Shown here: in pieces, positions 1 to 42,907 of the stretch
How the letters are laid out: the number at the start of each line of letters is the position of its first letter
Position numbering within the stretch: the first letter of the stretch is position 1
NCBI RefSeq assembly: GCF_039654945.1
Contig: NW_027361798.1
Coordinates: 3,596,001 to 3,660,000, forward strand
Reading direction: 5' to 3'
Origin: Dendrobates tinctorius
Taxonomy: Eukaryota
Length of the DNA stretch: 64,000 nt
Made by a program: the position numbers and the translations under genes
Notes under the pieces: generated by a model
Told to the model about the DNA's origin: nothing
What the model saw: only the letters and a program-made list of their open reading frames with translations
Database searches by the model: none

Positions 1-3000
1 CTCCTCCCTGCAAAGCTGTATGATCACTGCTACCTGCTCCTTGCAGAGCTGTATGATCAGTGCCACCACCTCCTCCCTGCAGAGCTTTATGATCAGTGCC
101 CCCACCTCCTTCCTGCAGAGCTGTATGATCAGTGGCACCACCTCCTCCCTGCAGAGCTGTATGATCAGTGCCACCACCTCCTCCCTGCAGAGCTGTATGA
201 TCAGTGCCACAACCTCCTCCCTGCAGAGCTGTATGATCAGTGTCACCACCTCCACCCTGCAGAGCTGTATTATCAGTGCCACCACCTTCTCCCTGCAGAT
301 CTGTATGATCAGAGCCATCACCTCCTCCCTGCAGAGCTGTATGATCAGTGCCACCTCCTCCCTGCAGAGCTGTATGATCAGTGCCACCACCTCTTTCCTG
401 CACAGCTGTATGATCAGTGCCATCACCTCCTCCCTCCAGAGCTGTATGATCAGTGGCACCACCTCCTCCCTGCAGAGCTGTATGATCAGTGCCACCACCT
501 CCTCCCTGCAGAGCTGTATGATCAGTGCCACCACCTCCTCCCTGCAGAGCTGTATGATCAGTGCCACCACCTCCACCCTGCAGAGCTGTATTATCAGTGC
601 CACCACCTTCTCTCTGCAGATCTGTATGATCAGAGCCATCACCTCCTCCCTGCAGAGCTGTATGATCAGTGCCACCTCCTCCCTGCAGAGCTGTATGATC
701 AGTGCCACCACCTCTTTACTGCACAGCTGTATGATCAGTGCCATCACCTCCTCCCTCCAGAGCTGTATGATCAGTGCCACCACCTCCACCCTGCAGAGCT
801 GTATTATCAGTGCCACCACCTTCCCCCTGCAGATCTGTATGATCAGAGCCATCAACTCCTCCCTGCAGAGCTGTATGATCAGTGCCACCTCCTCCCTGCA
901 GAGCTGTATGATCAGTGCCACCACCTCTTTCCTGCAGAGCTGTATGATCAGTGCCATCACCTCCTCCCTCCAGAGCTGTATGATCAGTGCCACCACCTCC
1001 TCCCTGCAGAGCTGTATGATCAGTGCCACCACCTCTTTCCTGCAGAGCTGTATGATCAGTGCCATCACCTCCTCCCTGCAGACATATATGATCAGTGCCA
1101 CCACGTCCTCCCTTCAGAGCTGTATGATTAGTTCCACCACCTCCTCCCTGCAGAGCCTTATGATCAGTGCAATCACCTCCTCCCTGCAGAGCTGTATGAT
1201 CAGTGCCATTGCCTCCTCCCTTCAGAGCTGTATTATTAGTGCCACCACCTTCTCCCTGCAGAGCTGTATGATTAGTGCCACCACCTCCTCCCTGCAGAGC
1301 TGTATGATCAGTGCCACCACCTCCTCCCTGCAGAGCTGTATGATCAGTGTCACCACCTCCTCCCTGCAGAGCTGTTTGACCAATGCCATCACCTCCTCCC
1401 TGCCGAGCTGTATGATCAGTGCCACCACCTACTCCCTGCAGAGCTGAATGATCAGTGCCACCTCCTCCCTGCAGAGCTGTATGATCAGTGTCAACACCTC
1501 CTCCCTGCAGAGCTGTATGATCAGTGCCATCACCTCATCCTAGGCAGAGCTGTATGATCAGTGCCACCAACTTCTCCCTGCAGAGCTGTATGATCAGTGC
1601 CACCACCTCCTCACTGCAGAGCTGTATGGTCAGAGCCTCCACCTATTCCCTGCAGAGATATATGATCAGTGCCAACACCTCCTCCCTGCAGAGCTGTATG
1701 ATCAATGCCATCACCTCCTCCCTGCAGAGATGTATGATCAGTGCAACCACCTCCTCCCTGCAGAGCTGTATGATCAGTGCCACCACCTCCTCCCTGCAAA
1801 GCTGTATGATCAGTGCCACCACCTCCTCCCTGCAGTGCTGTATGATCACTGCTACTTCATCCCTGCAGAGCTGTATGATCAGTGCCACCTCCTTCCTGCA
1901 GAGCTGTATGATCACTACCAACTCCTCCCTGCAGAGTTGTATGATCAGTGCCACCACCTCCTCACTGCAGAGCTGTTTGATCACTGCCACCTCCTCCTCT
2001 CTACAGAGCTGTATGATCACTACCACTTCTTCCCTGCAGAGTTGTATGATCAGTGCCACCACCTCCTCCCTGCAGAGCTGTATGATCACTGCCACGTGCC
2101 ACCTCCTCCCTGCAGAGTTGTATGATCAGTGCCACCACCTCCTCACTGCAGAGCTGTATGATCAGTGCCACCTCCTCCTCCCTGCAGAGCTGTATGATCA
2201 GTGCCATAACCTCCTCCTTGCAGAGCTGTATGATCAGTGCCATCACCTCCTCCCTTCAGAGCTGAATGATCAGTGCCACCTCTTCCCTGCAGAGTTGTAT
2301 GATCAGTGCCACCTCCTCCTCCCTGCAGAGCTGTATGATCAGTGCCACCACCTACTCCCTGCAGAGCTGTATGATCAGTGCCATCACCTCCTCACTCCAG
2401 AGTTGTATGATCAGTGCCACCACCTCCTCCCTGCAGAGCTGCATGATCAATGTCACCACCTCCTCCCTGCAGAGCAGTATGATCAGTGCCACCACCTCCT
2501 CCCTGCAGAGCTGTATTATCAGAGCCACCACCTTCTCCCTGCAGAACTGAATGATCAGAGCCATCACCTCCTCCCTGCAGAGCTGTATGATCAGTGCCAC
2601 CTCCTCCCTGCAGAGCTGTATGATCAGTGTCACCACCTCCTTCCTGCAGAGCTGTATGATCAGTGCCATCACCTCCTCCCTCCAGAGCAGTATGATCAGT
2701 GCCATCACCTCCTCCCTGCAGAGCTGTATGATCACTGCCACCACCTGCTCCCTGCAGAGCTTTGTGACCAAGGCCATTACCTCCTCCCTGCAGAGCTGTA
2801 TGATCAGTGCCTCCACCTCCTCCCTGCAGAGGTGTATGATCAGTGCCTCCACCTCCTCACTGCAGAGCTGTATGATCAGTGCCACCACCTCCTCCCTACA
2901 GAGCTGTATGATCACTGCCACCACCTCCTCCCTGCCGAGCTGTATGATCAGTGCCACCACCTACTCCCTGCAGAGCTGAATGATCAGTGCCACCTCCTCC

Positions 3001-6000
3001 CTGCAGAGCAGTATGATCAGTGTCACCACCTCCTCCCTGCAGAGCAGTATGATCAGTGTCACCACCTCCTCCCTGCAGAGCTGTATGATCAGTGCCATCA
3101 CCTCTTCCCATGCAGAGCTGTATGATCAGTGCCACCAACTCCTCCCTGCAGAGCTGTATGATCAGTGCCATCACCTCTTCCCAGGTAGAGCTGTAAGATC
3201 AGTGCCACCACCTCCTCCCTGCAGAGGTGTATGATCAGTGCCATCACCTCTTCCCAGGCAGAGCTGTATGATCAGTGCCACCACCTCCTCCCTGCAGTGC
3301 TGTATGATCAGCGCCACCACCTACTCCCTGCAGAGCTGAATGATCAGTGCCACCTCCTCCCTGCAGAGCAGTATGATCAGTGTCACCACCTCCTCCCTGC
3401 AGAGCTGTATGATCAGTGCCATCACCTCTTCCCAGGCAGAGCTGTATGATCAGTGCCACAAACTCCTCCCTGCAGAGCTGTATGGTCAGTGCCACCACCT
3501 CCTCACTGCAGAGCTGTATTATCAGAGCCACCACCTTCTCCCTGCAGAACTGTATGATCAGAGCCATCACCTCCTCCCTGCAGAGCTGTATGATCAGTGG
3601 CACCTCCTCCCTGCAGAGCTGTATGATCAGTGCCATCACCTCCTCCTTCCAGAGCTGTATGATCAGTGGCACCACCTCCTCCCTGCAGAGATATATGATC
3701 AGTGCCACCACTTCCTCCCTGCAGAGCTGTATGATTAGTTCCACCACCTCCTCCCTGCAGAGCTGTATGATAACTGCCACCACCTCCTCCCTGCAGAGCT
3801 GCATGATCAGTGCCACCACCTACTCCCTGCAGAGCTGAATGATCATTGACACCTCCTCCCTGTAGAGTTGAATGATCAGTGCCACCACCTCCTTCCTGCT
3901 GAGCTGCATGATCACTGCCACCACCTCCTCCCTGCAGAGCTGCATGATCAGTGCCATCACCTCCTCCCTGCAGAGCTGTATGATCACTGCCACCACCTCC
4001 TCCCTGCAGAGCTGCATGATCAGTGCCACCTCCTACTCCCTGCAGAGCTGAATGATCATTGCCACCTCCTCCCTGTAGAGTTGTATGATCAGTGCCACCA
4101 CCTCCTCCCTGCAGAGCTGTATGATCAGTGAATCCACCTCCTCCCTGCTGAGCTGTATGATCAGTCCCACCACCTCCTCCATGCAGAGCTGCATGATCAT
4201 TGCCATCACCTCCTCCCTGCAGAGCTGTATGATCACTGCCACCTCCTCCCTGTAGAGTTGTATGATCAGTGTCACCACCTCCTCCCTGCAGAGCTGCATG
4301 ATCAGTGCCATCACCTCCTCCATGCAGAGCTGTATGATCACTGCCACCACCTCCTCCCTGCAGAGCTGCATGATCAGTGCCACCTCCTACTCCCTGCAGA
4401 GCTGAATGATCATTGCCACCTCCTCCCTGTAGAGTTGTATGTTCAGAACCACCACCTCCTCCCTGCAGAGGTGTATGATCACTGCCACCACCTCCTCCCT
4501 GCAGAGCTGTGTGACCAATGCCATTACCTCCTCCCTGCAGAGGTGTATGATCAGTGCCTCTACCTCCTCCCTGCAGAGCTGTATGATCAGTTCCACCACC
4601 TCCTCCCTGCAGAGCTGTATGATCACTGCCACCAACTCCTCCCTGCCGAGCTGTATGATCAGTGCCACCACCTACTCCTTGCAGAGCTGAATGATCAGTG
4701 CCACCTCCTCCCTGCAGAGCTGTATGATCAGTGTCACCACCTCCTCCCTGCAGAGCTGTATGATCAGTGCCACCACCTCCTCCCTGCAGAGCTGTATTAT
4801 CAGTGCCATCAACTCCTGCCTGCAGAGCTGTATGATCACTGCCACCTCCTCCCTGTAGAGCTGTATGTTCAGAGCCACCACCTTCTCCCTGCAGAGGTGT
4901 ATGATCACTGCCACCACCTCCTCCCTGCAGAGCTGTGTGACCAATGCCATTACCTCCTCCCTGCAGAGCTGTATGATCAGTGCCTCCACTTCCTCCCTGC
5001 AGAGGTGTATGATCAGTGCCTCCACCTCCTCCCTGCAGAGATGTATGATCAGTGCCACCACCTCCTCACTGCAGAGCTGTATGATCACTGCCACCACCTC
5101 CTCCCTGCCAAGCTGTATGATCAGTGCCACCACCTACTCCCTGCAGAGCTGAATGATCAGTGCCATCTCCTCCCTGCAGAGCAGTATGATCAGTGTCACC
5201 ACCTCCTCCCTGCAGAGCTGTATGATCAGTGCCACCACCTCCTCCCTGCAGAGCTGTATGACCAATGCCATCACCTCCTCCCTGCCGAGCTTTATGATCA
5301 GTGCCACCTCCTACTCCCTGCAGAGCTGAATGATCAGTGCCACCTCCTCCCTGCAGAGCTGTATGATCAGTGTCACCACCTCCTCCCTGCAGAGCTGTAT
5401 GATCAGTGCCATCACCTCATCCTAGGCAGAGCTGTATGATCAGTGCCACCAACTCCTCCTTTGCAGAGCTGTATGATCAGTGCCATCACCTCTTCCCAGG
5501 CAGAGCTGTAAGATCAGTGCCACCAACTCCTCCCTGCAGAGCTGTATGATCACTGCCACCACCTCCTCACTGCAGAGCTGTATGGTCAGAGCCTCCACCT
5601 ATTCCCTGCAGAGATATATGATCAGTGCCAACACCTCCTCCCTGCAGAGCTGTATGATCAATGCCATCACCTCCTCCCTGCAGAGATGTATGATCAGTGC
5701 AACCACCTCCTCCCTGCAGAGCTGTATGATCAGTGCCACCACCTCCTCCCTGCAAAGCTGTATGATCAGTGCCACCACCTCCTCCCTGCAGTGCTGTATG
5801 ATCACTGCCACGTGCCACCTCCTCCCTGCAGAGTTGTATGATCAGTGCCACCACCTCCTCACTGCAGAGCTGTATGATCACTGCTACTTCATCCCTGCAG
5901 AGCTGTATTATCAGTGCCATTGCCTCCTCCCTTCAGAGCTGTTTGATCAGTGCCACCTCCTTCCTGCAGAGCTGTATGATCACTACCACCTCCTCCCTGC

Positions 6001-9000
6001 AGAGTTGTATGATCAGTGCCACCACCTCCTCACTGCAGAGCTGTTTGATCACTGCCACCTCCTCCTCCCTACAGAGCTGAATGATCACTACCACTTCCTC
6101 TCTGCAGAGCTGTATGATCACTGCCACGTGCCACCTCCTCCCTGCAGAGTTGTATGATCAGTGCCACCACCTCCTCACTGCAGAGCTGTATGATCAGTGC
6201 CACCTCCTCCTCCCTGCAGAGCTGTATGATCAGTGCCATCACCTCCTCCTTGCAGAGCTGTATGATCAGTGCCATCACCTCCTCCCTTCAGAGCTGAATG
6301 ATCAGTTCCACCTCTTCCCTGCAAAGCTGTATGATCACTACTACTTCTTCCCTGCAGAGTTGTATGATCAGTGCCACCACCTCCTCCCTGCAGAGCTGTA
6401 TGATCAGTGCCACCACCTCCTCCCTGCAGAGCTGCATGATCAATGTCACCACCTCCTCCCTGCAGAGCAGTATGATCAGTGCCACCACCTCCTCCCTGCA
6501 GAGCTGTATGATCAGTGCCACCTCCTCCCTGCAGAGCTGTATGATCAGTGCCACTACCTCCTTCCTGCAGAGCTGTATGATCAGTGCCATCACCTCCTCC
6601 CTCCAGAGCTGTATGATCAGTGCCACCACCTACTCCCTGCAGAGCTGTATGATCAGTGCCATCACCTCCTCACTCCAGAGTTGTATGATCAGTGCCACCA
6701 CCTCCTCCCTGCAGAGCTGCATGATCAATGTCACCACCTCCTCCCTGCAGAGCAGTATGATCAGTGCCACCACCTCCTCCCTGCAGAGCTGTATGATCAG
6801 TGCCACCTCCTCCCTGCAGAGCTGTATGATCAGTGCCACTACCTCCTTCCTGCAGAGCTGTATGATCAGTGCCATCACCTCCTCCCTGCAGAACTGAATG
6901 ATCAGAGCCATCACCTCCTCCCTGCAGAGCTGTATGATCAGTGCCACCTCCTCCCTGCAGAGCTGTATGATCAGTGCCACTACCTCCTTCCTGCAGAGCT
7001 GTATGATCAGTGCCATCACCTCCTCCCTCCAGAGCTGTATGATCAGTGCCATCACCTCCTCCCTGCAGAGCTGTATGATCACTGCCACCACCTGCTCCCT
7101 GCAGAGCTTTGTGACCAAGGCCATTACCTCCTCCCTGCAGAGCTGTATGATCAGTGCCTCCACCTCCTCCCTGCAGAGGTGTATGATCAGTGCCTCCACC
7201 TCCTCACTGCAGAGCTGTATGATCAGTGCCACCACCTCCTCCCTACAGAGCTGTATGATCACTGCCACCACCTCCTCCCTGCCGAGCTGTATGATCAGTG
7301 CCACCACCTCCTCCCAACAGAGCTGTAAGATCACTGCCACCACCTCCTCCCTGCAGAGCTGAATGATCAGTGCCACCTCCTCCCTGCAGAGCAGTATGAT
7401 CAGTGTCACCACCTCCTCCCTGCAGAGCTGTATGATCAGTGCCATCACCTCTTCCCAGGCAGAGCTGTATGATCAGTGCCACCACCTCCTCCCTGCAGAG
7501 GTGTATGATCAGTGCCATCACCTCTTCCCAGGCAGAGCTGTATGATCAGTGCCACCACCTCCTCCCTGCAGAGCTGTATGATCAGTGCCACCACCTCCTC
7601 CCTGCAGAGCTGCATGATCAGTGCCACCACCTACTCCCTGCAGAGCTGAATGATCATTGCCACCTCCTCCCTGTAGAGTTGAATGATCAGTGCCACCACC
7701 TCCTTCCTGCTGAGCTGCATGATCACTGCCACCACCTCCTCCCTGCAGAGCTGCATGATCAGTGCCATCACCTCCTCCCTGCAGAGCTGTATGATCACTG
7801 CCACCACCTCCTCCCTGCAGAGCTGCATGATCAGTGCCACCACCTACTCCCTGCAGAGCTGAATGATCATTGCCACCTCCTCCCTGTAGAGTTGTATGAT
7901 CAGTGCCACCACCTCCTCCCTGCAGAGCTGTATGATCAGTGCCACCACCTCCTCCCTGCTGAGCTGTATGATCAGTCCCACCACCTCCTCCATGCAGAGC
8001 TGCATGATCACTGCCACCACCTCCTCCCTGTAGAGCTGTATGATCAGTGCCACCACCTCCTCCCTGCTGAGCTGTATGATCACTGCCATCACCTCCTCCC
8101 TGCAGAGCTGTATTATCAGTGCCACCTCCTCCTTCCTGCATAGCTGTATGATCACTGCCACCTCCTCCCTGCAGAGCTGTATGTTCAGAACCACCACCTC
8201 CTCAATGCAGAGATGTATGATCACTGCCACCACCTCCTCCCTGCAGAGGTGTATGATCAGTGCCTCTACCTCCTCCCTGCAGAGCTGTATGATCACTGCC
8301 ACCAACTCCTCCCTGCCGAGCTGTATGATCAGTGCCACCACCTACTCCTTGCAGAGCTGAATGATCAGTGTCACCACCTCCTCCCTGCAGAGCTGTATTA
8401 TCAGTGCCATCAACTCCTGCCTGCAGAGCTGTATGATCACTGCCACCTCCTCCCTGCAGAGCTGTATGTTCAGAGCCACCACCTTCTCCCTGCAGAGGTG
8501 TATGATCACTGCCACCACCTCCTCCCTGCAGAGCTGTGTGACCAATGCCATTACCTCCTTCCTGCAGAGCTGTATGATCAGTGCCTCCACCTCCTCCCTG
8601 CAGAGGTGTATGATCAGTGCCTCCACCTCCTCCCTGCAGAGCTGTATGATCAGTGCCACCACCTCCTCACTGCAGAGCTGTATGATCACTGCCACCACCT
8701 CCTCCCTGCCGAGCTGTATGATCAGTGCCACCACCTACTCCCTGCAGAGCTGAATGATCAGTGCCACCTCCTCCCTGCAGAGCAGTATGATCAGTGTCAC
8801 CACCTCCTCCCTGCAGAGCTGTATGATCAGTGCCATCACCTCCTCCTTGCAGAGCTGTATGATCAGTGCCATCACCTCCTCCCTTCAGAGCTGAATGATC
8901 AGTGCCACCTCTTCCCTGCAAAGCTGTATGATCACTACTACCTCTTCCCTGCAGAGTTGTATGATCAGTGCCACCACCTCCTCCCTGCAGAGTTGTATGA

Positions 9001-12000
9001 TCAGTGCCACCTCCTCCTCCCTGCAGAGCTGTATGATCAGTGCCATCACCTCCTCACTCCAGAGTTGTATGATCAGTGCCACCACCTCCTCCCTGCAGAG
9101 CTGCATGATCAGTGCCACCACCTCCTCCCTGCAGAGCAGTATGATCAGTGCCACCACCTCCTCCCTGCAGAGCTGTATTATCAGAGCCACCACCTTCTCC
9201 CTGCAGAACTGAATGATCAGAGCCATCACCTCCTTCCTGCAGAGCTGTATGATCAGTGCCACCTCCTCCCCGCAGAGCTGTATGATCAGTGCCACCACCT
9301 CCTTCCTGCAGAGCTGTATGATCAGTGCCATCACCTCCTCCCTCCAGAGCTGTATGATCAGTGCCATCACCTCCTCCCTGCAGAGCTGTATGATCACTGC
9401 CACCACCTGCTCCCTGCAGAGCTTTGTGACCAAGGCCATTACCTCCTCCCTGCAGAGCTGTATGATCAGTGCCTCCACCTCCTCCCTGCAGAGGTGTATG
9501 ATCAGTTCCTCCACCTCCTCACTGCAGATCTGTATGATCAGTGCCTCCACCTCCTCCCTACAGAGCTGTATGATCACTGCCACCACCTCCTCCCTGCCGA
9601 GCTGTATGATCAGTGCCACCTCCTCCCTGCAGAGCAGTATGATCAGTGTCACCACCTCCTCCCTGCAGAGCTGTATGATCAGTGCCATCACCTCTTCCCA
9701 GGCAGAGCTGTATGATCAGTGCCACCACCTCCTCCCTGCCGAGCTGTATGATCAGTGCCACCACCTACTCCCTGCAGAGCTGAATGATCAGTGCCACCTC
9801 CTCCCTGCAGAGCAGTATGATCAGTGTCACCACCTCCTCCCTGCAGAGCTGTATGATCAGTGCCATCACCTCTTCCCAGGCAGAGCTGTATGATCAGTGC
9901 CACCACCTCCTCCCTGCAGAGCTGAATGATCAGTGCCACCTCCTCCCTGCAGAGCAGTATGATCAGTGTCACCACCTCCTCCCTGCAGAGCTGTATGATC
10001 AGTGTCATCACCTCTTCCCAGGCAGAGCTGTATGATCAGTGCCACCAACTCCTCCCTGCAGAGCTGTATGATCAGTGCCATCACCTCTTCCCAGGTAGAG
10101 CTGTAAGATCAGTGCCACCACCTCCTCCCTGCAGAGGTGTATGATCAGTGCCATCACCTCTTCCCAGGCAGAGCTGTATGATCAGTGCCACCACCTCCTC
10201 CCTGCCGAGCTGTATGATCAGTGCCACCACCTACTCCCTGCAGAGCTGAATGATCAGTGCCACCTCCTCCCTGCAGAGCAGTATGATCAGTGTCACCACC
10301 TCCTCCCTGCAGAGCTGTATGATCAGTGCCATCACCTCTTCCCAGGCAGAGCTGTATGATCAGTGCCACCAACTCCTCCCTGCAGAGCTGTATGGTCAGT
10401 GCCACCACCTCCTCCCTGCAGAGATATATGATCAGTGCCACCACTTCCTTCCTGCAGAGCTGTATGATTAGTTCCACCACCTCCTCCCTGCAGAGCTGTA
10501 TGATCAGTGCCACCACCTCCTCCCTGCCGAGCTGTATGATCAGTGCCACCACCTACTCCCTGCAGAGCTGAATGATCAGTGCCACCTCCTCCCTGCAGAG
10601 CAGTATGATCAGTGTCACCACCTCCTCCCTGCAGAGCTGTATGATCAGTGCCATCACCTCTTCCCAGGCAGAGCTGTATGATCAGTGCCACCAACTCCTC
10701 CCTGCAGAGCTGTATGGTCAGTGCCACCACCTCCTCCCTGCAGAGATATATGATCAGTGCCACCACTTCCTTCCTGCAGAGCTGTATGATTAGTTCCACC
10801 ACCTCCTCCCTGCAGAGCTGTATGATCACTGCCACCACCTCCTTCCTGCAGAACTGTATGATCAGTGCCATCACCTCCTCCCTCCAGAGCTGTATGATCA
10901 GTGGCACCACCTCCTCCCTGCAGAGATATATGATCAGTGCCACCACTTCCTCCCTGCAGAGCTGTATGATTAGTTCCACCACCTCCTCCCTGCAGAGCTG
11001 TATGATCACTGCCACCACCTCCTCCCTGCAGAGCTGCATGATCAGTGCCACCACCTACTCCCTGCAGAGCTGAATGATCATTGCCACCTCCTCCCTGTAG
11101 AGTTGAATGATCAGTGCCACCACCTCCTTCCTGCTGAGCTGCATGATCACTGCCACCACCTCCTCCCTGCAGAGCTGCATGATCAGTGCCATCACCTCCT
11201 CCCTGCAGAGCTGTATGATCACTGCCACCACCTCCTCCCTGCAGAGCTGCATGATCAGTGCCACCACCTACTCCCTGCAGAGCTGAATGATCATTGCCAC
11301 CTCCTCCCTGTAAAGTTGTATGATCAGTGCCACCACCTCCTCCCTGCAGAGCTGTATGATCAGTGCCACCACCTCCTCCCTGCTGAGCTGTATGATCAGT
11401 CCCACCACCTCCTCCATGCAGAGCTGCATGATCAGTGCCATCACCTCCTCCCTGCAGAGCTGTATGATCACTGCCACCACCTCCTCCCTGTAGAGCTGTA
11501 TGATCAGTGCCACCACCTCCTCCCTGCTGAGCTGTATGATCACTGCCATCACCTCCTCCCTGCAGAGCTGTATTATCAGTGCCACCACCTCCTCCCTGCA
11601 TAGATGTATGATCACTGCCACCTCCTCCCTGCAGAGCTGTATGTTCAGAGCCACCACCTCCTCCCTGCAGAGGTGTATGATCACTGCCACCACCTCCTCC
11701 CTGCAGAGCTGTGTGACCAATGCCATTACCTCCTCCCTGCAGAGGTGTATGATCAGTGCCTCTACCTCCTCCCTGCAGTGCTGTATGATCTGTGCCACCA
11801 CCTCCTCCCTGCAGAGCTGTATGATCAGTGCCACCACCTCCTCCCTGCAGAGCTGTAGGATCAGTGACACCACCTCCTCCCTGCAGAGCTGTATGATTAG
11901 TGCCATCACCTCCTCCCTGCAGAGCTTTATGATCAGTGCCACCACCTCCTCCCTGCAGAGCTGTATGATCAGTGCCACCACCTCCTCCCTGCAGAGCTGT

Positions 12001-12202
12001 ATGATCAGTGCCATTGCCTCCTCCCTTCAGAGCTGTATGATTAGCTCCACCACCTTCTCCCTACAGAGCTGTATGATCAGTGCCTCCACCTCCTCCCTGC
12101 AGAGCTGTTTGATCAGTGTCACCACCTCCTCCTTGCAGAGCTGTATGATCACTACCATACTCCCTGCAGAGCTGCATGATCAGTGTCACCACCTACTCCC
12201 TG
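1..12202 (+). repeat. 36-bp satellite (ATGATCAGTGCCACCACCTCCTCCCTGCAGAGCTGT, with 33-bp variants), roughly 340 monomers, runs off the left edge
   Basis: Direct tandem periodicity; the 12/11-aa periodic ORFs (SSLQSCMISATT, LLPAELYDQCHH) reflect the 36/33-bp units. Confidence 0.98.
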
Positions 12203-13336
12203 CAGGGAGGAGGTGGAGGCACTCATCATTCAGCTCTGCAGGGAGGAGGTGGAGGCACTCATCATACAGCTCTGCAGGGAGGAGGTGGTGGCACTGATCA
12301 TACAGCTCTGCAGGGAGGAGGTGGTGACTCTGATCATACAGCTCTGCAGTGAGGAGTTGGTGGCACTGATCATACAGCTCTGCAGGGATGAGGTTATGGC
12401 ACTGATCATACAGCTCTGCATGAAGGAGGTGGTGGGACTGATCATGCAGCTCTGCAGGGAGGAGGCAATGGCACTGATCATACAGCTCTGCAGGGAGGAA
12501 GTAGTGGCAGTGATCATATAGCTCTGCAGGGAGGAAGTGGTGACACTGACCATACAGCTCTGCTGGGAGGAGGTGGTGGCACTGATCATACAGCTCTGCA
12601 GGGAGGAGGTGGTGGCACTGATCATACAGCTCTGCAGGTTGGAGGTGGTGGCACTGATCATACAGCTCTGCAGGGATGAGGTGGTGGCAGTGGTCATACA
12701 ACTCTGCAGGGAGGTGGTGTTGGCACTGATCATACAGCTCTGCAGGGAGGAGGTGGAGGCACTGATCATACAGCTCTGTAGGGAGAAGGTGGTGGAACTA
12801 ATCATACAGCTCTGAATGGAGGAAGCAATGGCACCGATCATACTGCTCTGCAGGGAGGAGGTGGTGACACTGATCATACAGCTTTGCAGGGAGGAGGTGG
12901 TGGCACTGATCATACAGCTCTGCAGGGAGGAAGTGGTGGGACTGATCCTGCAGCTCTGCAGGGAGGAGGCAATAGCACTGATCATACAGCTCTGCAGGGA
13001 GGAGGTGGTGGAACTAATCATAAAGCTCTGCAGGGAGGTGATGGTAGTGATCATACAGCTCTGCAAGGAGGAGGTGGTGACACTGATCAAACAGCTCTGC
13101 AGGGAGGAGGTGGTGGCACTGATCATACAGCTCTGCAAGGAGGAGGTGGTGGCACTGATCATACAGCTCTGCAGGGAGGAGGTGGTGGCACTGATCATAC
13201 AGCTCTGCAGGGAGAAGGTGATTGCACTGATCATAAGTCTCTGCAGGAAGGAGGCAATGGCACTGATCATACAGCTCTGCAGTGAGGAGGTGGTGGCACT
13301 GATCATACAGCTATGGAGGGAGGAGGTGATGGCACT
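12203..13336 (-). repeat. Same 36-bp satellite, opposite orientation
   Basis: Units read CACTGATCATACAGCTCTGCAGGGAGGAGGTGGTGG after the CTCCCTGCAGGGAG palindrome at 12196-12209. Confidence 0.97.
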
Positions 13337-14916
13337 ATAAACAGAAAGATAGTGAGGAAACACTTAGCTAACCTAAATGTATTCAAGTCTCCAGGTCCAG
13401 ATGAATTACACCCCAGAGTACTGAAGGAGATAGCAGAAGAAATTTTTGAACCCCTCTCCATAATCTTTGAAAATTCTTGGAGAACAGGAGAAGTGCCAGA
13501 AGACTGGAGAAGAGCAAATGTTGTTCCTATCTTCAAAAAGGGGAAGAAGGTGGACCCAGGCAACTATAGGCCGGTGAGTCTGACTTCTATACCAGGAAAG
13601 ATCTTTGAACAAATTATTAAACAACATGTATGTCAATACCTGGATAAGAATGAAGTGATTAAACAGAGTCAGCATGGGTTTGTAACTAATAAGTCATGTC
13701 AGACTAATTTAATTTCGTTCTATGATGGTATTACTGATTGGGTGGATCAAGGAAATGCTGTAGATATAGTATATCTTGACTTCAGCAAAGCATTTGACAA
13801 AGTCTCTCATACAATCCTTATTGAAAAAATGACTAAGTATGGAATGGACAAGGCAACTGTTAGGTGGATTCATAACTGGCTTAGTGATCGGACCCAAAGA
13901 GTGGTCGTAAATGGCTGCACATCCAGTTGGAAGAATGTCTCAAGTGGGGTACCACAGGGCTCTGTCCTGGGCCCTGTATTGTTCAACATCTTTATCAACG
14001 ATTTAGATGAAGGAATTGAGGGTAAACTGATTAAATTTGCTGATGACACAAAGCTAGGAGGGATAGCTAATACTAGAGAAGAGAGAGAGAGGATTCAAAA
14101 AGATTTAAATAAACTGGAGAAGTGGGCAGCAACTAACAGAATGGTTTTTAACAGGGAGAAATGCAAAGTACTACATCTGGGCAATAAAAATGAAAAAAGC
14201 ATATATAGAATGGGAGGAATAGGGCTAAGTGACAGCACATGTGAAAAAGACTTGGGTATACTAATAGATCACAGACTGAATATGAGTCAACAGTGTGATG
14301 CAGCAGCAAAAAAGGCAAATGCAATTCTAGGATGTATTAACAGAAGCATACAGTCTAGATCACGTGAAGTAATTATTTCCCTCTACTCCTCTTTGGTCAG
14401 ACCTCATCTGGAATATTGTGTCCAATTTTGGGCACCACATTTTAAAAAAGACATCAACAAACTGGAGCAAGTTCAGAAAAGAGCGACCAGAATGGTGACC
14501 GGTCTGCAAACCCTGTCTTATGAGGAAAGGTTGCAGGATTTGGGAATGTTTAGTTTGCAAAAGAGAAGACTGAGAGGAGACTTAATAGCTGTCTACAAAT
14601 ATCTAAAGGGCTGTCACATTGTAGAAGGATCAACTTTATTCTCATTTGCACAAGGAAAGACTAGAAGCAATGGGATGAAGCTGAATGGGAGGAGACACAG
14701 ATTAGATATTAGAAAAAACTTTTTGACAGTTAGAGTGATCAATGAGTGGAACAGGCTGCCACGAGAAGTGGTGAGTTCTCCTTCAATGGAAGTCTTCAAA
14801 CAAAGGCTGGACAGACATCTAACTGGGATGATTTAGCGAATCCTGCTTTGAGCAGGGGGTTGGACCAGATGGCCCAGGAGGTCCCTTCCAACTCTACGAT
14901 TCTATGATTCTATGAT
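13335..14916 (+). mobile_element. 5'-truncated CR1 LINE with an open C-terminal ORF2 (RT) ending at 14836
   Basis: KSPGPDELHP, NYRPVSLTS, GVPQGSVLGP and FADD motifs; CR1 3' UTR ending in (ATTCTATG)n; inserted in satellite at GGCACT^GATCAT without a TSD. Confidence 0.96.
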
Positions 14917-15975
14917 CATACAGCTCTGCAGGAAGGAGGTGGTGGCACTGATCATACAGCTCTGCAGGGAGGAGGTGGCACTCATCATACAGCTCTGCAG
15001 GGAGGAGGTGATGGCTCTGATCATACAGTTCTGCAGGGAGAAGGTGGTGGCACTGATAATACAGCTCTGCAGGGAGGAGGTGGTGGCACTGATCATACAG
15101 CTCTGCAGGGAGGAGGTGGTGCCACTGATCATACAGCTCTGGAGTGAGGAGGTGATGGCACAATTCATACAGCTCTGCAGGGAGGAGGTGGCACTCATCA
15201 TACAGCTCTGCAGGAAGGAGGTGGGGCCACTGATCATAAAGCTCTGCAGGGAGGAGTTGGCACTGATCATACAGCTCTGCAGGGAGGAGGTGGTGGCACT
15301 GATCATACAGCTCTGCAGGGAGGAGGTGGAGGCACTGATCATACAGCTCTGCAGGGAGGAGGTGGAGGCACTCATCATTCAGCTCTGCAGGGAGGAGGTG
15401 GTGGCAGTGATCATACAGCTCTGCATGAAGGAGGTGGTGGGACTCATCATACAGCTCTGCAGGGAGGTGATGGTAGTGATCATACAGCTCTGCAGGGAGG
15501 AGGTGGTGGCACTGATCATACAGCTCTGCAGGGAGGAGGTGGTGGCACTGATCATACAGCTCTGCAGGGTGGAGGTGGTGGCACTGATCATACAGCTCTG
15601 CAGGGAGGTGATGGTAGTGATCATACAGCTCTGCAGGGAGGAGGTGGTGGCACTGATCATACAGCTCTGCAGGGAGGTGATGGCACTGATCATACAGCTC
15701 TGCAGGGAGGAGGTGGTGGCACTGATCATACAGCTCTGCAGGGAGGTGATGGTAGTGATCATACAGCTCTGCAGGGAGGAGGTGGTGGCACTGATCATAC
15801 AGCTCTGCAGGGAGGAGGTGGTGGCACTGATCATACAGCTCTGCAGGGAGGAGGTGGTGGCACTGATCATACAGCTCTGCAGGGAGGAGGTGGTGGCACT
15901 GATCATACAGCTCTGCAGGGAGGAGGTGGTGGCACTGATCATACAGCTCTGCAGTGAGGAGGTGGTGGCTCTGAT
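14913..15975 (-). repeat. 36-bp satellite, H1-proximal part; first monomer overlaps the H1 stem-loop
   Basis: Tandem units continue up to GGCTCTGAT at 15967-15975, one 36-bp period after GGCACTGAT at 15931-15939. Confidence 0.97.
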
Positions 15976-15982
15976 AAGAGCC
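15943..15982 (-). terminator. H1 histone 3' stem-loop (GGCTCTTATCAGAGCC, 15967-15982), ACCAC cleavage site and HDE/U7 site (AGAGCTGT, 15943-15950)
   Basis: Matches the replication-dependent histone stem-loop consensus, with 5' CACAAA and 3' ACCAC flanks, 30 nt after the H1 stop. Confidence 0.93.
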
Positions 15983-16011
15983 TTTGTGGGATGAGGACAA
16001 GGCGGCTCCAC

Positions 16012-16647
16012 TTATTTCTTGGCCGCGGGCTTCTTTGCTTTAGCCGCTTTCTTAGCCGGACTCTTGGCAGCTTTGGGTTTCGCCGCCTTCTTAGCGGGGC
16101 CCTTCGTCACCTTCTTGGGCTTCGGAGCGGCCTTTGGCTTCTTGGGGCTCTTGTCTGCTTTTTTGGCTGCTGCGGGCTTCTTGGCTTTTTTCGGGCTCTT
16201 CTTGGCCGCGATCGGAGCCTTCTTAGGCTTTTTCGGGGATTTGGCCGCTTTCTTGGCTGCGGGTTTCTTGGCCGCAGCCGCCGGCTTTTTCTTGTCCTTG
16301 GTCTCCTGCTTCTTGTTCAGCTTGAATGACCCGGAGGCGCCGCTGCCCTTTATCTGGAGCAGGGCGCCCTTAGTGACCAGACCCCTGACGGCCAGCTTCA
16401 GGCGGCTGTTATTCTTCTCCACATCGTACCCTCCGGCAGCCAGAGCCTTCTTCAGGGCGGCTAGAGACACCCCGCTGCGCTCCTTGGAGGCGGACACGGC
16501 TTTGACGATCAGCTCGGACACGCTGGGGCCGGAGGGCTTCTTGCTCTTCTTGGCGCTCCCTGCAGCGGATTTCTTTGGCTGCTTCTTGGACTTGGCGGCC
16601 GGTTCGGCGGGAGGAGGAGGCGCGGCGGCTGGTGCGGTCTCTGCCAT
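16012..16647 (-). CDS. H1: Linker histone H1, replication-dependent, 211 aa
   Basis: MAETAPAA start, globular domain [41 protein letters not shown], Lys/Ala/Pro-rich tail, 3' stem-loop. Confidence 0.97.
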
Positions 16648-16714
16648 TGTGTAACGAAAAACTGACAGAATAATCTCCTGCAAGGAAAACACTGAGGACT
16701 GAGCGGGAGCAGCC

Positions 16715-16810
16715 TCATATATACAGTCACACTGCGCACTGATTGGCTGCCGAGCTGCGTCCTCCTAAGCTTCTATTGGCTGACACTGGACACAGGCCCC
16801 GCCCCCTGTC
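16715..16810 (-). promoter_or_regulatory. H1 promoter (TATA, two CCAAT boxes, GC box)
   Basis: TATATA about 16717, ATTGG at about 16742 and 16775, CCCCGCCCC at about 16797; conserved at 40484-40572 in the second H1 copy. Confidence 0.7.
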
Positions 16811-17902: not shown

Positions 17903-18580
17903 GCACTAATAGAGGATTATACCCACTGTGCCAAGCACTAATAGACGGTTATACCCACTGTGCCAGGCACTAATAGAGGATTATACCCACTGTGCCAAGC
18001 ACTAATAGAGGATTATACCCACTGTGCCAAGCACTAATAGAGGATTATACCCACTGTGCCAAGCACTAATAGAGGATTATACCTACTGTGCCAAACACTA
18101 ATAGAGGATTATACCCACTGTGCCAAGCACTAATAGGGGATTATACCCACTGTGCCTCCAAGCACTAATAGAGGATTATACCCACTGTGAATCACTAATA
18201 GAAGACTTTACCCACTGTGCCAGGCACTAATAGAGGATTATACCCCCTGTGCCAGGCATTAAGAGGATTATATCCCCTGTGCCATGCACTAATAGAGGAT
18301 TATACCCACTGTGAATCACTAATAGAAGACTTTACCCACTGTGCCAGTCACTAATAGAGGATTATACCCACTGTGCCAGGCACTAATAGAGGATTATATC
18401 CCCTGTGCCAAGCACTAATAGAGGATTATACCCACTGTGCCAGGCACTAATAGAGGATTATACCCACTGTGCCAAGCACTAATAGAGGATTATACCCACT
18501 GTGCCAAGCACTAATAGAGGATTATACCCACTGTGCCAGGCACTAATAGAGGATTATACCCACTATGCCAGGCACTCATA
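17903..18580 (+). repeat. 32-bp satellite (GCACTAATAGAGGATTATACCCACTGTGCCAA) upstream of H4
   Basis: ACTAATAGAG recurs at 18001 and 18033; about 21 copies. Confidence 0.96.
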
Positions 18581-18734
18581 GCTCTCCGGTCATGTGGAGG
18601 CGTCTGACTGTTGATGATCTCCCAGAGATTGAATTATTTCCAGGCCGGAACCTCACATTTTCAGTAATTTCTCGTTCCTCCAGCGACGCTGACAGGACGA
18701 GGTTTGCAGAATTTTCTTGTTAGCATAATACAGA

Positions 18735-19279: not shown

Positions 19280-19295
19280 GGCTCTTCTCAGAGAC
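19280..19295 (+). terminator. H4 3' stem-loop with a C>A substitution (GGCTCTTCTCAGAGAC)
   Basis: The other two copies read GGCTCTTCTCAGAGCC. Confidence 0.85.
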
Positions 19296-19869
19296 GCCCA
19301 CATCTCACGTGAGAGGCTGCAATTCCCGCTGGGGTCTAGCGGTCGCTGCTGGTGTGATCGCCGGGACCGGCTTGTGACGTTGCGCATTGGGGGGAGACGT
19401 TCTCTCTTCTGGAGCTGATCCAGTGAGTAGTCTCAGTGTGAGGTGGGGCACAGATGATCCGGGTGTATGGGGGAATCGATCGGCCGCACAGTCACCTCCT
19501 ATGATGCTGCAGTTACTACAGAGCAGAAATCCGAGTGCTGGTAATAAATGTGGTTGTGCCACGTCTCCTGCTGCTGAGATCCTGTGGGTTGTAGGATGGC
19601 TGCGAGGAGTAGAATGCGGCTGCACTGATGAATGGACGCCGGTGTGAACGCTCCTGAGCAGCGGCTCAGGATTGGGGTATCGACAGGATACCTACATGCG
19701 ATGAGAGGTGCCGTCTGTGTTTCTGCGCCACCACATGGGCAGGGAGGGACGGTGCAGGAATACAGGGTCGCTCTGCCTGTGATCAGGAGAACATCTGCCC
19801 ACATCACACTTTGCGCTTCGCACCAATCACCGGATCTAAATCCCGGAGCAAATTAACAAATTATCATAT

Positions 19870-22171: not shown

Positions 22172-22281
22172 ACCGCAGTTCCGGAATTAGGCCTAACCGT
22201 CATTCCTGAAAAAATGAAAAACTTACGTGTGCAAACCACAGGTGCTGTAGCTTGCTTAACAGCTCGCCAGCCGTTCTCACG

Positions 22282-33280: not shown

Positions 33281-33633
33281 GCTCTCCGGTCAGGTGGAGG
33301 CGTCTGACTGATGATGATCTCCCAGAGATTGGATTATTTCCAGGCCGGAATCTCACATTGTCAGTAATTTCTCGTTCCTCCAGCGGCGCTGACAGGACGA
33401 GGTTTGCGGAATTTTCTTGTTAGCATAATACAGAGAAGCGGGAAATTCAAATCACCAACTGTCCTGTGCTCAGCCAATCAGCGAGAAAGGGGAGGGGCTG
33501 AAAATGGCAATTCATGAAAACAAACATCTCCGGTATCGCGTCATCACTGTGCAGTTCTCACTCCGGTCCGCCTAGCCTCCATATAAAGCAGGACTCAGCG
33601 CTGACCCCTCACAGTCGTCTGAAGATTTCCTGA

Positions 33634-33948
<315 letters not shown>

Positions 33949-33980
33949 TTGTATTCTCGTCTCTGTCCTGACAACCCAAA

Positions 33981-33996
33981 GGCTCTTCTCAGAGCC
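33981..33996 (+). terminator. H4 3' stem-loop GGCTCTTCTCAGAGCC
   Basis: Consensus match, preceded by CCCAAA and followed by purine-rich GAGAGGCTG. Confidence 0.92.
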
Positions 33997-35524
33997 GCCC
34001 ACATCTCACGTGAGAGGCTGCAATTCCCGCTGGGGTCTGGCGGTCGCTGCTGGTGTGATCGCCGGGACCGGCTTGTGACGTTGAGCATTGGGGGGAGACG
34101 TTCTCTCTTCTGGAGCTGATCCAGTGAGTAGTCTCAGTGTGAGGTGGGGCACAGATGATCCGGGTGTATGGGGGAATCGATCGGCCGCACAGTCACCTCC
34201 TATGATGCTGCAGTTACTACAGAGCAGAAATCCGAGTGCTGGTAATAAATGTGGTTGTGCCACGTCTCCTGCTGCTGAGATCCTGTGGGTTGTAGGATGG
34301 CTGCGAGGAGTGGAATGCGGCTGCACTGATGAATGGACGCCGGTGTGAACGCTCCTGAGCAGCGGCTCAGGATTGGGGTATCAACAGGATACCTACATGC
34401 GATGAGAGGGGCTGTTTCTGCGCCACCACATGGGCAGGGAGGGACGGTGCAGGAATACAGGGTCGCTCTGCCTGTGATCAGGAGAACATCTGCCCACATC
34501 ACACTTTGCGCTTCGCACCAATCACCGGATCTAAATCCCGGAGCAAATTAACAAATTATCATATACAGGAATATACCCACTGTGCCAACTGCTAATAGCA
34601 GGAATTATATCCACTGAGTCACCCACTAGAGAGATATATAGAGGATTATACCCACTGCTCTGTCACCAGGTCCCAACTCTACAATAACGTCATCCGAGAT
34701 GTGTGGAAAGGAATCAATGACCCCAACTATGGAACCACAGCTCTGCCCCTAGTGCCGGCGCCTCCAACAGAGACCAGGAGGAGGTCGCTGCTCTCTATGG
34801 AGCTGCCCCGGGCTCAGTGGGTCCCTGTGATCTCGGGACTCGATGTCGCAGCCCGGGCGGCTCTCTTCCTCCGGACACACTGCGGTCCCGGCTGCGGCCT
34901 CCTCTCTCGGTGCTGCCCCTGGAGCTCGCACCGCTGTTTGCACTTTATGATCTATTCTGGGGTTGAGCCTTGTAACAGGGTGTATGGGCGCTATATCCGG
35001 ACACAGACCCCTCTGTGCACAGTACAAAGCTCGGAGTGCTGCTGTGAGATGAAGGGAAGGTAACGGCGGCGGCCGATCAGGGGAGCGATCAGCAGCTCCG
35101 GAGAGCAGGACTATGTGCTCTGCGGGTGCAGCTGCCCCAGACCGGACGGCTCACGTCACAGCGATCTCCGCTAATAAGCAGAGGGGCCGGGAATAATCCG
35201 AAGGACAGGAAAGGGATTGAGCGGGGAATTCAAAACTATCAACGGGTCTGTGATCAGCCAATGAGAGAAGACCGCAGGCGCGACCAATCCCAGAGCCAGG
35301 TATGGACTCCTCCGGTTAACTCCTTAGTGACCGTGCGCTGCTCAATTCCCCCTTCTGTATAAGGATGCATGGAAGCAGGAACAGAACCGCTGGATCTACC
35401 GATAACGGCACCAGCCAGAATAACAGCCCACAGACAACTGTGGACTAAGCAGCCCAGATATTACCGAACCAGGAGGAAGGAAGGAGAAATGGCAGGAAGG
35501 AGCTCATCTGTGGGAGGATTTGGT

Positions 35525-35540
35525 GGCTCTGAGAAGAGCC
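35525..35540 (-). terminator. H3 3' stem-loop GGCTCTTCTCAGAGCC followed by ACCA
   Basis: Consensus match 30 nt after the H3 stop; downstream AGATGAGCT is HDE-like. Confidence 0.92.
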
Positions 35541-35569
35541 TTTGTGTTGTGGTTGGTGCTCGGGAAGAT

Positions 35570-36145
<576 letters not shown>

Positions 36146-36409
36146 CGTGAAGCAAACCGCGGCCTCCCGCCCTGTAACCCCGCCTCCTCCATGATGCGGC
36201 TCTCAGCAGATCGCGCTCATCTCCCGCTGTACAGAATAGAGAAATCCGGTGACGTCATCTCCAGCGCAGGAGGAGACCTGGAGCAGCCGCCACCGCACTG
36301 CCATGACCCCGTGTACACAGCGCTGTACAGTGCAGCTCCCCATTATCACCAGATCACACCCATCCTGACACTGCGCCCGGATTATCAGCAGCTCATAAAC
36401 TACAGAGGA

Positions 36410-39400
36410 GGCACTGATCATACAGCTCTGCAGGGAGGAGGTGGTGGCACTGATCATACAGCTCTGCAGGGAGGAGGTGGTGGCAGTGATCATACAGCTC
36501 TGCAGGGAGGAGGTGGTGGCAGTGATCATACAGCTCTGCAGGGAGGAGGTGGTGGCACTGATCATACAGCTCTGCAGGGAGGAGGTGACACTGATCATAC
36601 AGCTCTGCAGGGAGGAGGTGGTGGCACTGATCATACAACTCTGCAGGAAGGAGGTGGTGGCACTGATCATACAGCTCTGCAGGAAGGAGGTGGTGGCACT
36701 GATCATACAGCTATGCAGCGAGGAGGTGATGGCACTGATCATACAGCCCTGCAGCGAGGAGGTGATGGCACTGATCATACAGCCCTGCAGCGAGGAGGTG
36801 GCAGTGATTATACAGCTCTGCAGGGAGGAGGTGGAGGCACTGATCATACAGCCCTGCAGGGAGGAGGTGGAGGCACTGATCATACAGCCCTGCAGGGAGG
36901 AGGTGGTGGCACTGATCATACAGCTCTGCAGGGAGGAGGTGGTGGCACTGATCATACAGCTCTGCAGGGAGGAGGTTGTGGCACTGATCATACAGCTCTG
37001 CAGGAAGGAGGTGGTGGCACTTATCATACAGCTCTGCAGCGAGGAGGTGATGGCACTGATCATACAGCCCTGCAGGAAGGAGGTGATGGCACTGATCATA
37101 CAGCCCTGCAGCGAGGAGGTGGCAGTGATTATACAGCTCTGCAGGGAGGAGGTGGTGGCACTGATCATACAGCCCTGCAGGGAGGAGGTGGTGGCACTGA
37201 TCATACAGCCCTGCAGGGAGGAGGTGTTGGCACTGATCATACAGCTCTGCAGGGAGGAGGTGGTGGCAGTGATCATACAGCTCTGCAGAAAGGAGGTGGT
37301 GGCACTGATCATACAGCTCTGCAGGGAGGAGGTGGTGGCACTGATCATACAGCTCTGCAGGGATGAGGTGATGGCAGTGATCATACAGCTCTGCAGGGAG
37401 GAGGTGGTGGCACTGATCATACAGCTCTGCAGGGAGGAGGTGGTGGCACTGATCATACAGCTCTGCATGGAGGAGGTGGTGGCACTGATCATACAGCTCT
37501 GCAGGGAGGAGGTGGCACTGATCATACAGCTCTGCAGGGAGGAGGTGGTGGCACTAATCATACAGCTCTGCATGGAGGAGGTGGTGGCACTGATCATACA
37601 GTCCTGCAGGGAGGAGGTGGAGGCACTGATCATACAGCCCTGCAGGGAGGAGGTGGTGGCACTGATCATACAGCTCTGCAGCGAGGAGGTGATGGCACTG
37701 ATCATACAGCTCTGCAGCGAGGAGGTGATGGCACTGATCATACAGCCCTGCAGCGAGGAGGTGATGGCACTGATCATACAGCCCTGCAGCGAGGAGGTGG
37801 CAGTGATTATACAGCTCTGCAGGGAGGAGGTGGTGGCACTGATCATACAGCCCTGCAGGGAGGAGGTGGAGGCACTGATCATACAGCCCTGCAGGGAGGA
37901 GGTGTTGGCACTGATCATACAGCTCTGCAGGGAGGAGGTGGTGGCTGTGATCATACAGCTCTGCAGGAAGGAGGTGGTGGCACTGATCATACAGCTCTGC
38001 AGGGAGGAGGTGGTGGCACTGATCATACAGCTCTGCAGGGATGAGGTGATGGCAGTGATCATACAGCTCTGCAGGGAGGAGGTGGTGGCACTGATCATAC
38101 AGCTCTGCAGGGAGGAGGTGGTGGCACTGATCATACAGCTCTGCAGGGAGGAGGTGGTGGCACTGATCATACAGCTCTGCATGGAGGAGGTGGTGGCACT
38201 GATCATACAGCTCTGCAGGGAGGAGGTGGCACTGATCATACAGCTCTGCAGGGAGGAGGTGGTGGCACTGATCATACAGCTCTGCATGGAGGAGGTGGTG
38301 GCACTGATCATACAGTCCTGCAGGGAGGAGGTGGAGGCACTGATCATACAGCCCTGCAGGGAGGAGGTGGTGGCACTGATCATACAGCCCTGCAGGGAGG
38401 TGTTGGCACTGATCATACAGCCCTGCAGCGAGGAGGTGATGGCACTGATCATACAGCTCTGCAGGGAGGTGTTGGCACTGATCATACAGCCCTGCAGCGA
38501 GGAGGTGGCAGTGATTATACAGCTCTGCAGGGAGGTGTTGGCACTGATCATACAGCTCTGCAGGGAGGAGGTGGTGGAACTGATCATACAGCTCTGCAGG
38601 GATGAGGTGATGGCAGTGATCATACAGCTCTGCAGGGAGGAGGTGGTGGCACTGATCATACAGCTCTGCAGGGAGGAGGTGGTGGCACTGATCATACAGC
38701 TCTGCATGGAGGAGGTGGTGGCACTGATCATACAGCTCTGCAGGGAGGAGGTGGCACTGATCATACAGCTCTGCAGGGAGGAGGTGGAGGCACTGATCAT
38801 ACAGCTCTACATGGAGGAGGTGGTGGCACTGATCATACAGCCCTGCAGGGAGGAGGTGGAGGCACTGATCATACAGCCCTGCAGGGAGGAGGTGGTGGCA
38901 CTGATCATACAGCTCTGCAGCGAGGAGGTGATGGCACTGATCATACAGCTCTGCAGCGAGGAGGTGATGGCACTGATCATACAGCTCTGCAGGGAGGAGG
39001 TGGAGGCACTGATCATACAGCCCTGCAGGGAGGAGGTGTTGGCATTGATCATACAGCCCTGCAGCGAGGAGGTGATGGCACTGATCATACAGCTCTGCAG
39101 CGAGGAGGTGGCAGTGATTATACAGCTCTGCAGGGAGGTGTTGGCACTGATCATACAGCCCTGCAGCGAGGAGGTGGCAGTGATTATACAGCTCTGCAGG
39201 GAGGAGGTGGTGGCACTGATCATACAGTCCTGCAGGGAGGAGGTGGAGGCACTGATCATACAGCCCTGCAGGGAGGAGGTGGTGGCACTGATCATACAGC
39301 TCTGCAGCGAGGAGGTGATGGCACTGATCATACAGCTCTGCAGCGAGGAGGTGATGGCACTGATCATACAGCCCTGCAGCGAGGAGGTGATGGCACTGAT

Positions 39401-40272
39401 CATACAGCCCTGCAGCGAGGAGGTGGCAGTGATTATACAGCTCTGCAGGGAGGAGGTGGTGGCACTGATCATACAGCCCTGCAGGGAGGAGGTGGAGGCA
39501 CTGATCATACAGCCCTGCAGGGAGGAGGTGTTGGCACTGATCATACAGCCCTGCAGCGAGGAGGTGATGGCACTGATCATACAGCTCTGCAGCGAGGAGG
39601 TGGCAGTGATTATACAGCTCTGCAGGGAGGTGATGGCACTGATCATACAGCTCTGCAGGGAGGAGGTGGAGGCACTGATCATACAGCCCTGCAGGGAGGT
39701 GTTGGCACTGATCATACAGCCCTGCAGCGAGGTGATGGCACTGATCATACAGCTCTGCAGGGAGGTGTTGGCACTGATCATACAGCCCTGCAGCGAGGAG
39801 GTGGCAGTGATTATACAGCTCTGCAGGGAGGTGTTGGCACTGATCATACAGCTCTGCAGGGAGGAGGTGGTGGCACTGATCATACAGCTCTGCAGGGATG
39901 AGGTGATGGCAGTGATCATACAGCTCTGCAGGGAGGAGGTGGTGGCACTGATCATACAGCTCTGCATGGAGGAGGTGGTGGCACTGATCATACAGCTATG
40001 CATGGAGGAGGTGGTGGCACTGATCATACAGCTCTGCAGGGAGGAGGTGGCACTGATCATACAGCTCTGCAGGGAGGAGGTGGTGGCACTGATCATACAG
40101 CCCTGCAGGGAGGAGGTGTTGGCATTGATCACACAGCCCTGCAGCGAGGAGGTGGTGGCACTAATCATACAGCTCTGCAGTGAGGAGGTGGTGGCACTGA
40201 TCATACAGCCCTGCAGGGAGGAGGTGGTGGCACTAATCATACAGCTCTGCAGTGAGGAGGTGGTGGCTCTGA
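36410..40272 (-). repeat. Second 36-bp satellite array (about 110 monomers) downstream of the truncated H1
   Basis: Same monomer with array-specific variants (CAGCCCTGCAG, GCAGCGAGG). Confidence 0.98.
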
Positions 40273-40414
40273 CTATCAGCTCGGACACGCTGGGGCCGGA
40301 GGGCTTCTTACTCTTCTTGGCGCTCCCTGCAGCGGATTTCTTTGGCTGCTTCTTGGACTTGGCAGCCGGTTCGGCGGGAGGAGGAGGCGCGGCGGCTGGC
40401 GCGGTCTCTGCCAT
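40265..40414 (-). pseudogene. H1: Truncated H1 (codons 1-48) fused in frame to the satellite
   Basis: [15 protein letters not shown], then RATTSSLQSC..; 5' flank and promoter nearly identical to the intact H1. Confidence 0.94.

Positions 40415-42478: not shown

Positions 42479-42907
<429 letters not shown>

Follow-up and report, generated by a model that had tools for sequence, protein, structure and literature searches.

How does a histone H1 gene come to run without a gap into a long satellite of 36-bp units, and do those units, which look like fragments of the signal for histone mRNA 3'-end formation, serve the cell in any way? Both questions are raised by a 64,000-nucleotide stretch of Dendrobates tinctorius DNA (contig NW_027361798.1, positions 3,596,001 to 3,660,000 of the forward strand; hereafter the window), which is part of a vertebrate histone gene cluster containing H1, H4 and H3 genes, LINE, hAT and Gypsy elements, and two short-unit satellites. 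Derivation of the 36-bp satellite from the H1 3'-processing signal is well supported, and this gene-derived satellite is probably for the most part neutral, that is, tolerated and not used.

Tandem Repeats Finder reported a 36-bp period at 1-12205 (342 copies, 86% matches), 12200-13336, 14913-15975 and 36410-40272. When units were delimited by wrap-around alignment to the 36-bp consensus, the satellite was segmented into four blocks (A to D, Table 1) of 343, 32, 32 and 111 units, which amount to 518 with the few partial end units included. The consensus was identical in all four blocks, and the average divergence from it ranged by block from 2.6 to 3.9 positions per 36-bp unit. Long head-to-tail arrays, a short unit, a common consensus and best lags of 9, 19 and 37 units characterize these blocks as satellite DNA.

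The intact H1 gene (H1a) adjoins block C; a comparison with a protein atlas assigned its product to Chordata and to no narrower group. As read on the minus strand, its stop codon was followed by a 29-nt 3' untranslated region (UTR), a stem-loop, ACCAC (15966-15962, directly after the stem-loop), an 11-nt spacer, the sequence AGAGCTGTA and then by consensus units. With a 6-bp stem and a 4-nt loop after a histone open reading frame (ORF), the stem-loop is that of a histone mRNA 3'-processing signal. In canonical metazoan signals, the stem-loop and an ACCCA-type cleavage site are followed, about 10-12 nt further on, by a purine-rich histone downstream element (HDE) that pairs with the 5' end of U7 snRNA; with AGAGCTGTA as the putative HDE, the junction has all these parts in their normal arrangement. 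The Rfam Histone3 model scored 31.9 bits (E 1.8e-7) at 15941-15987, slightly below its gathering score of 34; the H3 (32.9 bits) and H4 (28.2 bits) signals of the window likewise fell below that score, and these stem-loops were recovered by local E-value scans and not at the Rfam gathering level. The satellite register begins in the loop of the H1a stem-loop, and unit 1 (15975-15940) consists of the 3' arm of the stem, ACCAC, the 11-nt spacer and AGAGCTGTA. It departs from the consensus at two bases only, with A in place of T at position 6 and A in place of C at position 21, and the five units that follow are exact consensus. Both the direct run of the stem-loop into the 36-bp array and the composition of the first monomer had been proposed in an initial annotation of this DNA, and both were confirmed on the minus strand. 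Every satellite unit retains a remnant of the 3' arm, ACCACC, the spacer and the HDE core. What distinguishes the locus from a canonical signal is that these parts are repeated hundreds of times head to tail and that units 2 onward are without the 5' arm of the stem, and so without an SLBP site; neither a full stem-loop pattern nor a Rfam Histone3 match was found within the arrays from unit 2 onward.

Several observations point to the gene as the source of the satellite. The A at position 6 of unit 1, which was found at both of the H1 junctions in the window, pairs in the stem, which the consensus T would break; the unit under functional constraint retains the functional base. In addition, the portion of unit 1 that follows the stem aligned to the 3' flanks of the H3 and H4 genes better than did shuffled sequences (p ~0.006 each), and neither of these flanks carries satellite. 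Because of this alignment, unit 1 looks like an ordinary histone 3' flank of the cluster. Each of the four blocks is joined either to an H1 gene or to the remains of one. The reverse order of events, in which an older, unrelated 36-bp satellite entered the H1 3' flank by recombination where the two happened to be similar and has since provided the downstream element of the gene, would require that eight of the nine bases of the stem 3' arm, ACCACC and a 9-nt complement of U7 had come together at the right spacing by chance. It also has to accommodate the resemblance of unit 1 to the satellite-free H3 and H4 flanks and the H1 linkage of every array in the window. Even though satellites can spread by illegitimate recombination, and the second junction of the window (below) shows that microhomology joints happen here, we consider such an origin highly improbable. 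The origin from the H1 3' signal put forward in the initial annotation is supported, since the array is continuous and in register with the signal, the stem base was kept, and the junction recurs under a second species label.

We propose that the satellite would have started with the tandem duplication of a 36-bp piece of the H1 3'-processing region, one that began within the loop and ended shortly after the HDE, and that it would have grown by unequal exchange and slippage within the repeated histone gene cluster. The sequence GGCTCTT just before unit 1 is partly like the unit end AGCTGTATG, a resemblance that may have eased the first slippage. Indels were concentrated in the CCACCACC stretch of the unit, as is expected from slippage. 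Unit 1 would still act as the working H1 signal, with its stem 3' arm, cleavage site and HDE, and the later units would be copies without the 5' arm of the stem, which therefore could not bind SLBP.

The second junction lies at block D, which also begins with a unit carrying A at positions 6 and 21 and adjoins a dead H1 gene (H1b). Here, a deletion of about 531 bp fused GTCA, from within the coding sequence, to GAGCC in the stem 3' arm, with TCA as microhomology, and left H1b without 3' UTR and without the 5' arm of the stem. As regards this second array, the initial annotation was right about the diagnostic first unit, but the H1 gene next to it is dead, holds only 48 codons and has no stem-loop. 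The H1a and H1b copies were about 95% identical over approximately 3.5 kb, from 16498 and 40265 onward, respectively. Since the flanks are this similar and the A6/A21 unit is common to both, the two junctions represent one ancestral junction duplicated with the cluster, and the satellite is therefore older than the cluster duplication. Two independent origins of the H1-satellite junction were rejected on account of the same flanking identity.

Table 1. Coordinates of the satellite blocks, H1 genes and related features in the window.
Feature	Position	Strand	Remarks
Satellite block A	1..12205	+	343 units, H1-sense on plus strand; extends past left window edge
Array inversion point	12199..12212		Within palindrome CTCCCTGCAGGGAG, built on the unit's CTGCAG
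Satellite block B	12206..13336	-	32 units, H1-sense on minus strand
LINE (CR1-like), 5'-truncated	13337..14912	+	Open 507-aa reverse-transcriptase ORF; RVT_1, E 2e-36; ATTCTATG-repeat tail
Satellite block C	14913..15975	-	~30 units; unit 1 (15975-15940) belongs to the H1 processing signal; units 2-6 exact consensus
H1a HDE core AGAGCTGTA	15942..15950	-	11 nt past ACCAC
H1a stem-loop GGCTCT-TATC-AGAGCC = GGCTCTTATCAGAGCC	15967..15982	-	6-bp stem, 4-nt loop; 29 nt past stop codon
H1a, intact histone H1 gene	16012..16647	-	211 aa; Pfam Linker_histone, E 1e-21; stop TAA at 16014-16012
H4 stem-loop and 3' flank (comparator)	33976..34020	+	Resembles unit 1
H3 stem-loop and 3' flank (comparator)	35500..35545	-	Resembles satellite unit
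Satellite block D	36405..40273	-	~110 units, between dead H1b and H3 gene
H1b, dead H1	40271..40414	-	First 48 codons; promoter region kept

The arrays themselves behave like ordinary satellite DNA, with even variation along the unit, larger periods, an inversion, a LINE insertion, an array behind a dead gene and an abundance that, on a rough reading of summed contig depths, appears to differ widely between species. The region 1-15982, the span given in the initial annotation, is not one uniform array. It inverts at 12205 within the palindrome CTCCCTGCAGGGAG, where the GC skew changes sign, and it holds a LINE fragment of 1.58 kb that was inserted in the array and separates block B from block C, the two being one array. 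In block A, units differed from the consensus at 2.6 positions on average, and 179 of them carried exact AGAGCTGTA. Block D showed larger repeat periods of about 19 and about 37 units; towards its far end, ahead of the H3 gene, the units become degenerate. Over the whole satellite, exact AGAGCTGTA was found in 295 of the 518 units (57%) and AGAGCTG in 363 of them. Counts of HDE variants reflect the amplification of blocks and not independent events. Three distant monomers with TTATCAGAGCCACCACC had been taken as ancestral forms. They do occur, at 2516, 3519 and 9178, but the flanking variants are common to all three 17-mer copies, which are therefore one variant spread by larger duplications and not three relics. 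Because TTATCAGAGCCACCACC needs two changes from the consensus, each of which was present in 2.5-4% of units, it could also have arisen by chance.

The head-to-head meeting of blocks A and B at a palindrome, together with the passage of H1a read-through from sense into antisense units, would fit a reading in which the array has its effect as DNA or in the form of double-stranded RNA, its convergent blocks giving rise to fold-back RNA that would feed small-RNA silencing or mark the boundaries of the cluster. However, the arms near the inversion point do not mirror each other, with 4 differences in 29 nt, and the window contains this one inversion only, and we judge a role of this kind to be very unlikely. 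Long ORFs that pass through the arrays were rejected as genes, being explained by a 36-bp unit without stops in two frames. One of them (38807-40459) is opened by the start codon of the dead H1b and keeps its frame on entering the satellite, which it reads as a 12-aa repeat, reaching 550 aa, because the unit is 36 bp long and free of stops in two frames; nothing indicates that a product is made.

As a copy of the H1 3'-end signal, every unit has a sequence at which U7 is likely to dock. Human and mouse U7 contain UACAGCUCU (PMC7026596), and AGAGCTGTA was predicted to form a 9-bp duplex of -14 kcal/mol with the 5' end of mouse U7, which was used as a proxy for the U7 of this species. The complementarity between HDE and U7 stated in the initial annotation thus holds for mammalian U7. 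With the same proxy, the predicted duplex was -11.8 kcal/mol for the H4 signal of the window, -7.4 kcal/mol for its H3 signal and -6.8 +/- 2.1 kcal/mol for shuffled units. No U7 gene was found in the 64-kb window, where a scan at Rfam gathering level gave neither U7 nor Histone3, only an 18S-like fragment.

The pairing with human and mouse U7 is one of the points that would speak for functional arrays, in which read-through RNA with tens of HDE units recruits or titrates the U7 small nuclear ribonucleoprotein (snRNP). Such RNA would serve as a multivalent platform that keeps U7-rich bodies in place at the histone genes, would buffer free U7, or would offer reserve cleavage sites for halting polymerases that had passed the first signal. 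We regard this possibility as unlikely. The frequency of substitutions was 5.3% in the nine pairing positions versus 5.5% elsewhere in the unit, and the 9-nt HDE window ranked 19th of 36 for conservation. Hence the pairing positions are no better conserved than the rest of the unit and there was no sign of selection preserving the U7-binding site, although homogenisation within arrays weakens this test; moreover, the exact 9-mer has been lost in 43% of the units. Previous work has shown that SLBP is dispensable only if the duplex is strong, and that a substrate with nine uninterrupted base pairs is weakly processed (PMC7026596). A 9-bp duplex without SLBP is weak, and the units are without a stem-loop. 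The location of the arrays also argues against a function, one of them lying behind a dead gene, another being inverted and another being broken by a LINE.

Satellite words were present in sequencing runs of four organism labels. Contigs from these runs were placed on 15830-16760; their depths are rough, and the kinds of run were guessed. An RNA run of organism B yielded a 130-nt contig with a depth of 897, which covered 15930-16059 and extended 32 letters past the cleavage site. It was identical to the window from the stem-loop through the start of unit 2, with at least 9 differences in the 3' UTR. In that run the H1 coding sequence reached depths of about 5,000-40,000, and H1 copy depth was 100-300 in a DNA run twenty times larger, so that the junction contig must be derived from RNA. 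The contig indicates that some transcripts pass the cleavage site into the array, so that part of the array is made as RNA with HDE-like sites. This RNA contig into unit 2, at about 2-18% of H1 coding depth, and the fact that unit and junction are common to several species labels could also be expected if the arrays were functional. The depth in the same run nevertheless fell from 897 to about 40 within four units of the array. A small RNA run of organism A gave one 66-nt satellite contig with a depth of 2.2, which is not decisive.

In DNA of organism D, a contig spanned the 3' UTR and the stem-loop to 15956. The ratio of satellite to H1 word depth was about 20-70:1 in organism B DNA versus about 1000:1 or more in organism D DNA. 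Thus, the satellite occurs in related species labels at differing abundance, which varies more than tenfold between B and D as far as the rough depths allow, as is usual for a satellite and contrary to what functional arrays would lead one to expect. The depth in organism D also bears on the question of origin, given that many arrays may lie elsewhere than next to H1, as the recombination of an older satellite into the H1 flank would have it.

The number of sites that one read-through RNA could carry was also overstated as "hundreds" in the initial annotation. From H1a, read-through would encounter about 30 sense units, the antisense LINE, about 32 sense units and then the 343 antisense units of block A, which gives about 62 sense units; from the promoter of dead H1b it would encounter about 110. 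A sense reading of block A would need a promoter beyond the left edge of the window, and the idea that all 518 units are sense sites of one transcript was rejected because the array inverts at 12205. The proposals of a U7 sponge, a scaffold for the histone locus body or a fail-safe termination array found no positive support, in line with the equal substitution frequencies given above, and the neutral expansion offered as a fallback turned out to be the better reading. That nascent H1 read-through RNA, with tens of U7 docking sites per transcript, is a multivalent tether which gathers U7 snRNP around the histone genes or acts as its buffer, we hold to be a distinctly improbable case; if true, it would explain at the level of sequence why U7-rich bodies sit on the histone loci of this lineage. 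The antisense blocks, for their part, would give RNA that mimics the 5' end of U7: where 1-12205 and 12206-13336 run in opposite directions, each unit of antisense array RNA would contain UACAGCUCU, identical to the bases at the 5' end of U7, and such RNA could in principle pair with histone downstream elements.

Against the neutral origin from the H1 signal, on the other hand, the following points have to be weighed. Given the high abundance in organism D, many arrays may not adjoin H1. Conservation of junction and unit across species labels could also reflect constraint, and concerted evolution can mask selection, so that equal variability does not exclude function. Furthermore, between 78 and 95% of the units of each block were predicted to pair with mammalian U7 at -10 kcal/mol or below, and the predicted duplex of an intact unit is stronger than those of the H4 (-11.8 kcal/mol) and H3 (-7.4 kcal/mol) signals of the window itself.

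The locus has partial counterparts in other amphibians. Satellite 1 of the newt Notophthalmus is said to lie between histone gene clusters and to be transcribed by read-through on lampbrush loops, with a unit reportedly of about 220 bp; to our knowledge, its derivation from a processing signal has not been reported. In both cases the satellite follows immediately on histone genes, on their downstream side, and there is evidence that transcripts continue out of the gene into it. The PcP190 satellite of hyloid frogs originated from 5S rDNA (Vittorazzi et al. 2011, as cited in PMC12191414). It is alike in having come from a piece of a repeated gene family and in being common to related species at different abundances, but its 190-bp unit was taken from the body of a Pol III gene, whereas the present 36-bp unit comes from an RNA-processing signal and is still attached to the parent gene. 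A literature search, in which coverage of older journals was poor, returned no description of this satellite, of tandem HDEs or of histone-derived satellites in frogs.

At this locus the birth of a satellite can be read base by base, since neither the parent element nor the register nor the first unit has been lost. With a well-understood RNA-processing signal as the parent, the locus is a clear case of a functional gene element giving rise to a satellite. The arrays also constitute a test case provided by nature, in which many HDEs stand in tandem and lack SLBP sites, for the question whether such a series can recruit U7 snRNP, bring about cleavage or help to nucleate a histone locus body. 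If they are inert, cells can put up with hundreds of decoys next to the genuine site.

Two of the H4 copies in the window deviate from the expected structure. At 19281-19296, the 3' arm of the H4a stem-loop reads AGAGAC instead of AGAGCC, which breaks one pair, the arms of H4b and H4c being canonical; the third H4 copy (42482-42910) is frame-shifted after approximately residue 72 with its stem-loop (42813) intact, and is probably a pseudogene. The second satellite of the window has a 32-bp unit and was found at 17903-18581, 32207-33281, 41672-42126, 44434-46892 and 48393-48837, between H1 and H4 and around LINE fragments, and it is partly inverted at 32324-32722. The spacer contains, at 21769-22200, a degenerate piece of eukaryotic 18S rRNA, which matched model positions 1118-1666 of Rfam SSU_rRNA_eukarya at 96.9 bits and adjoins a 130-bp tandem repeat and a hAT transposase ORF. 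Finally, a C/T-rich tandem array with a 34-bp unit (28 copies, 92% matches) was located at 58654-59615, within a region of Gypsy-type integrase and pol ORFs.

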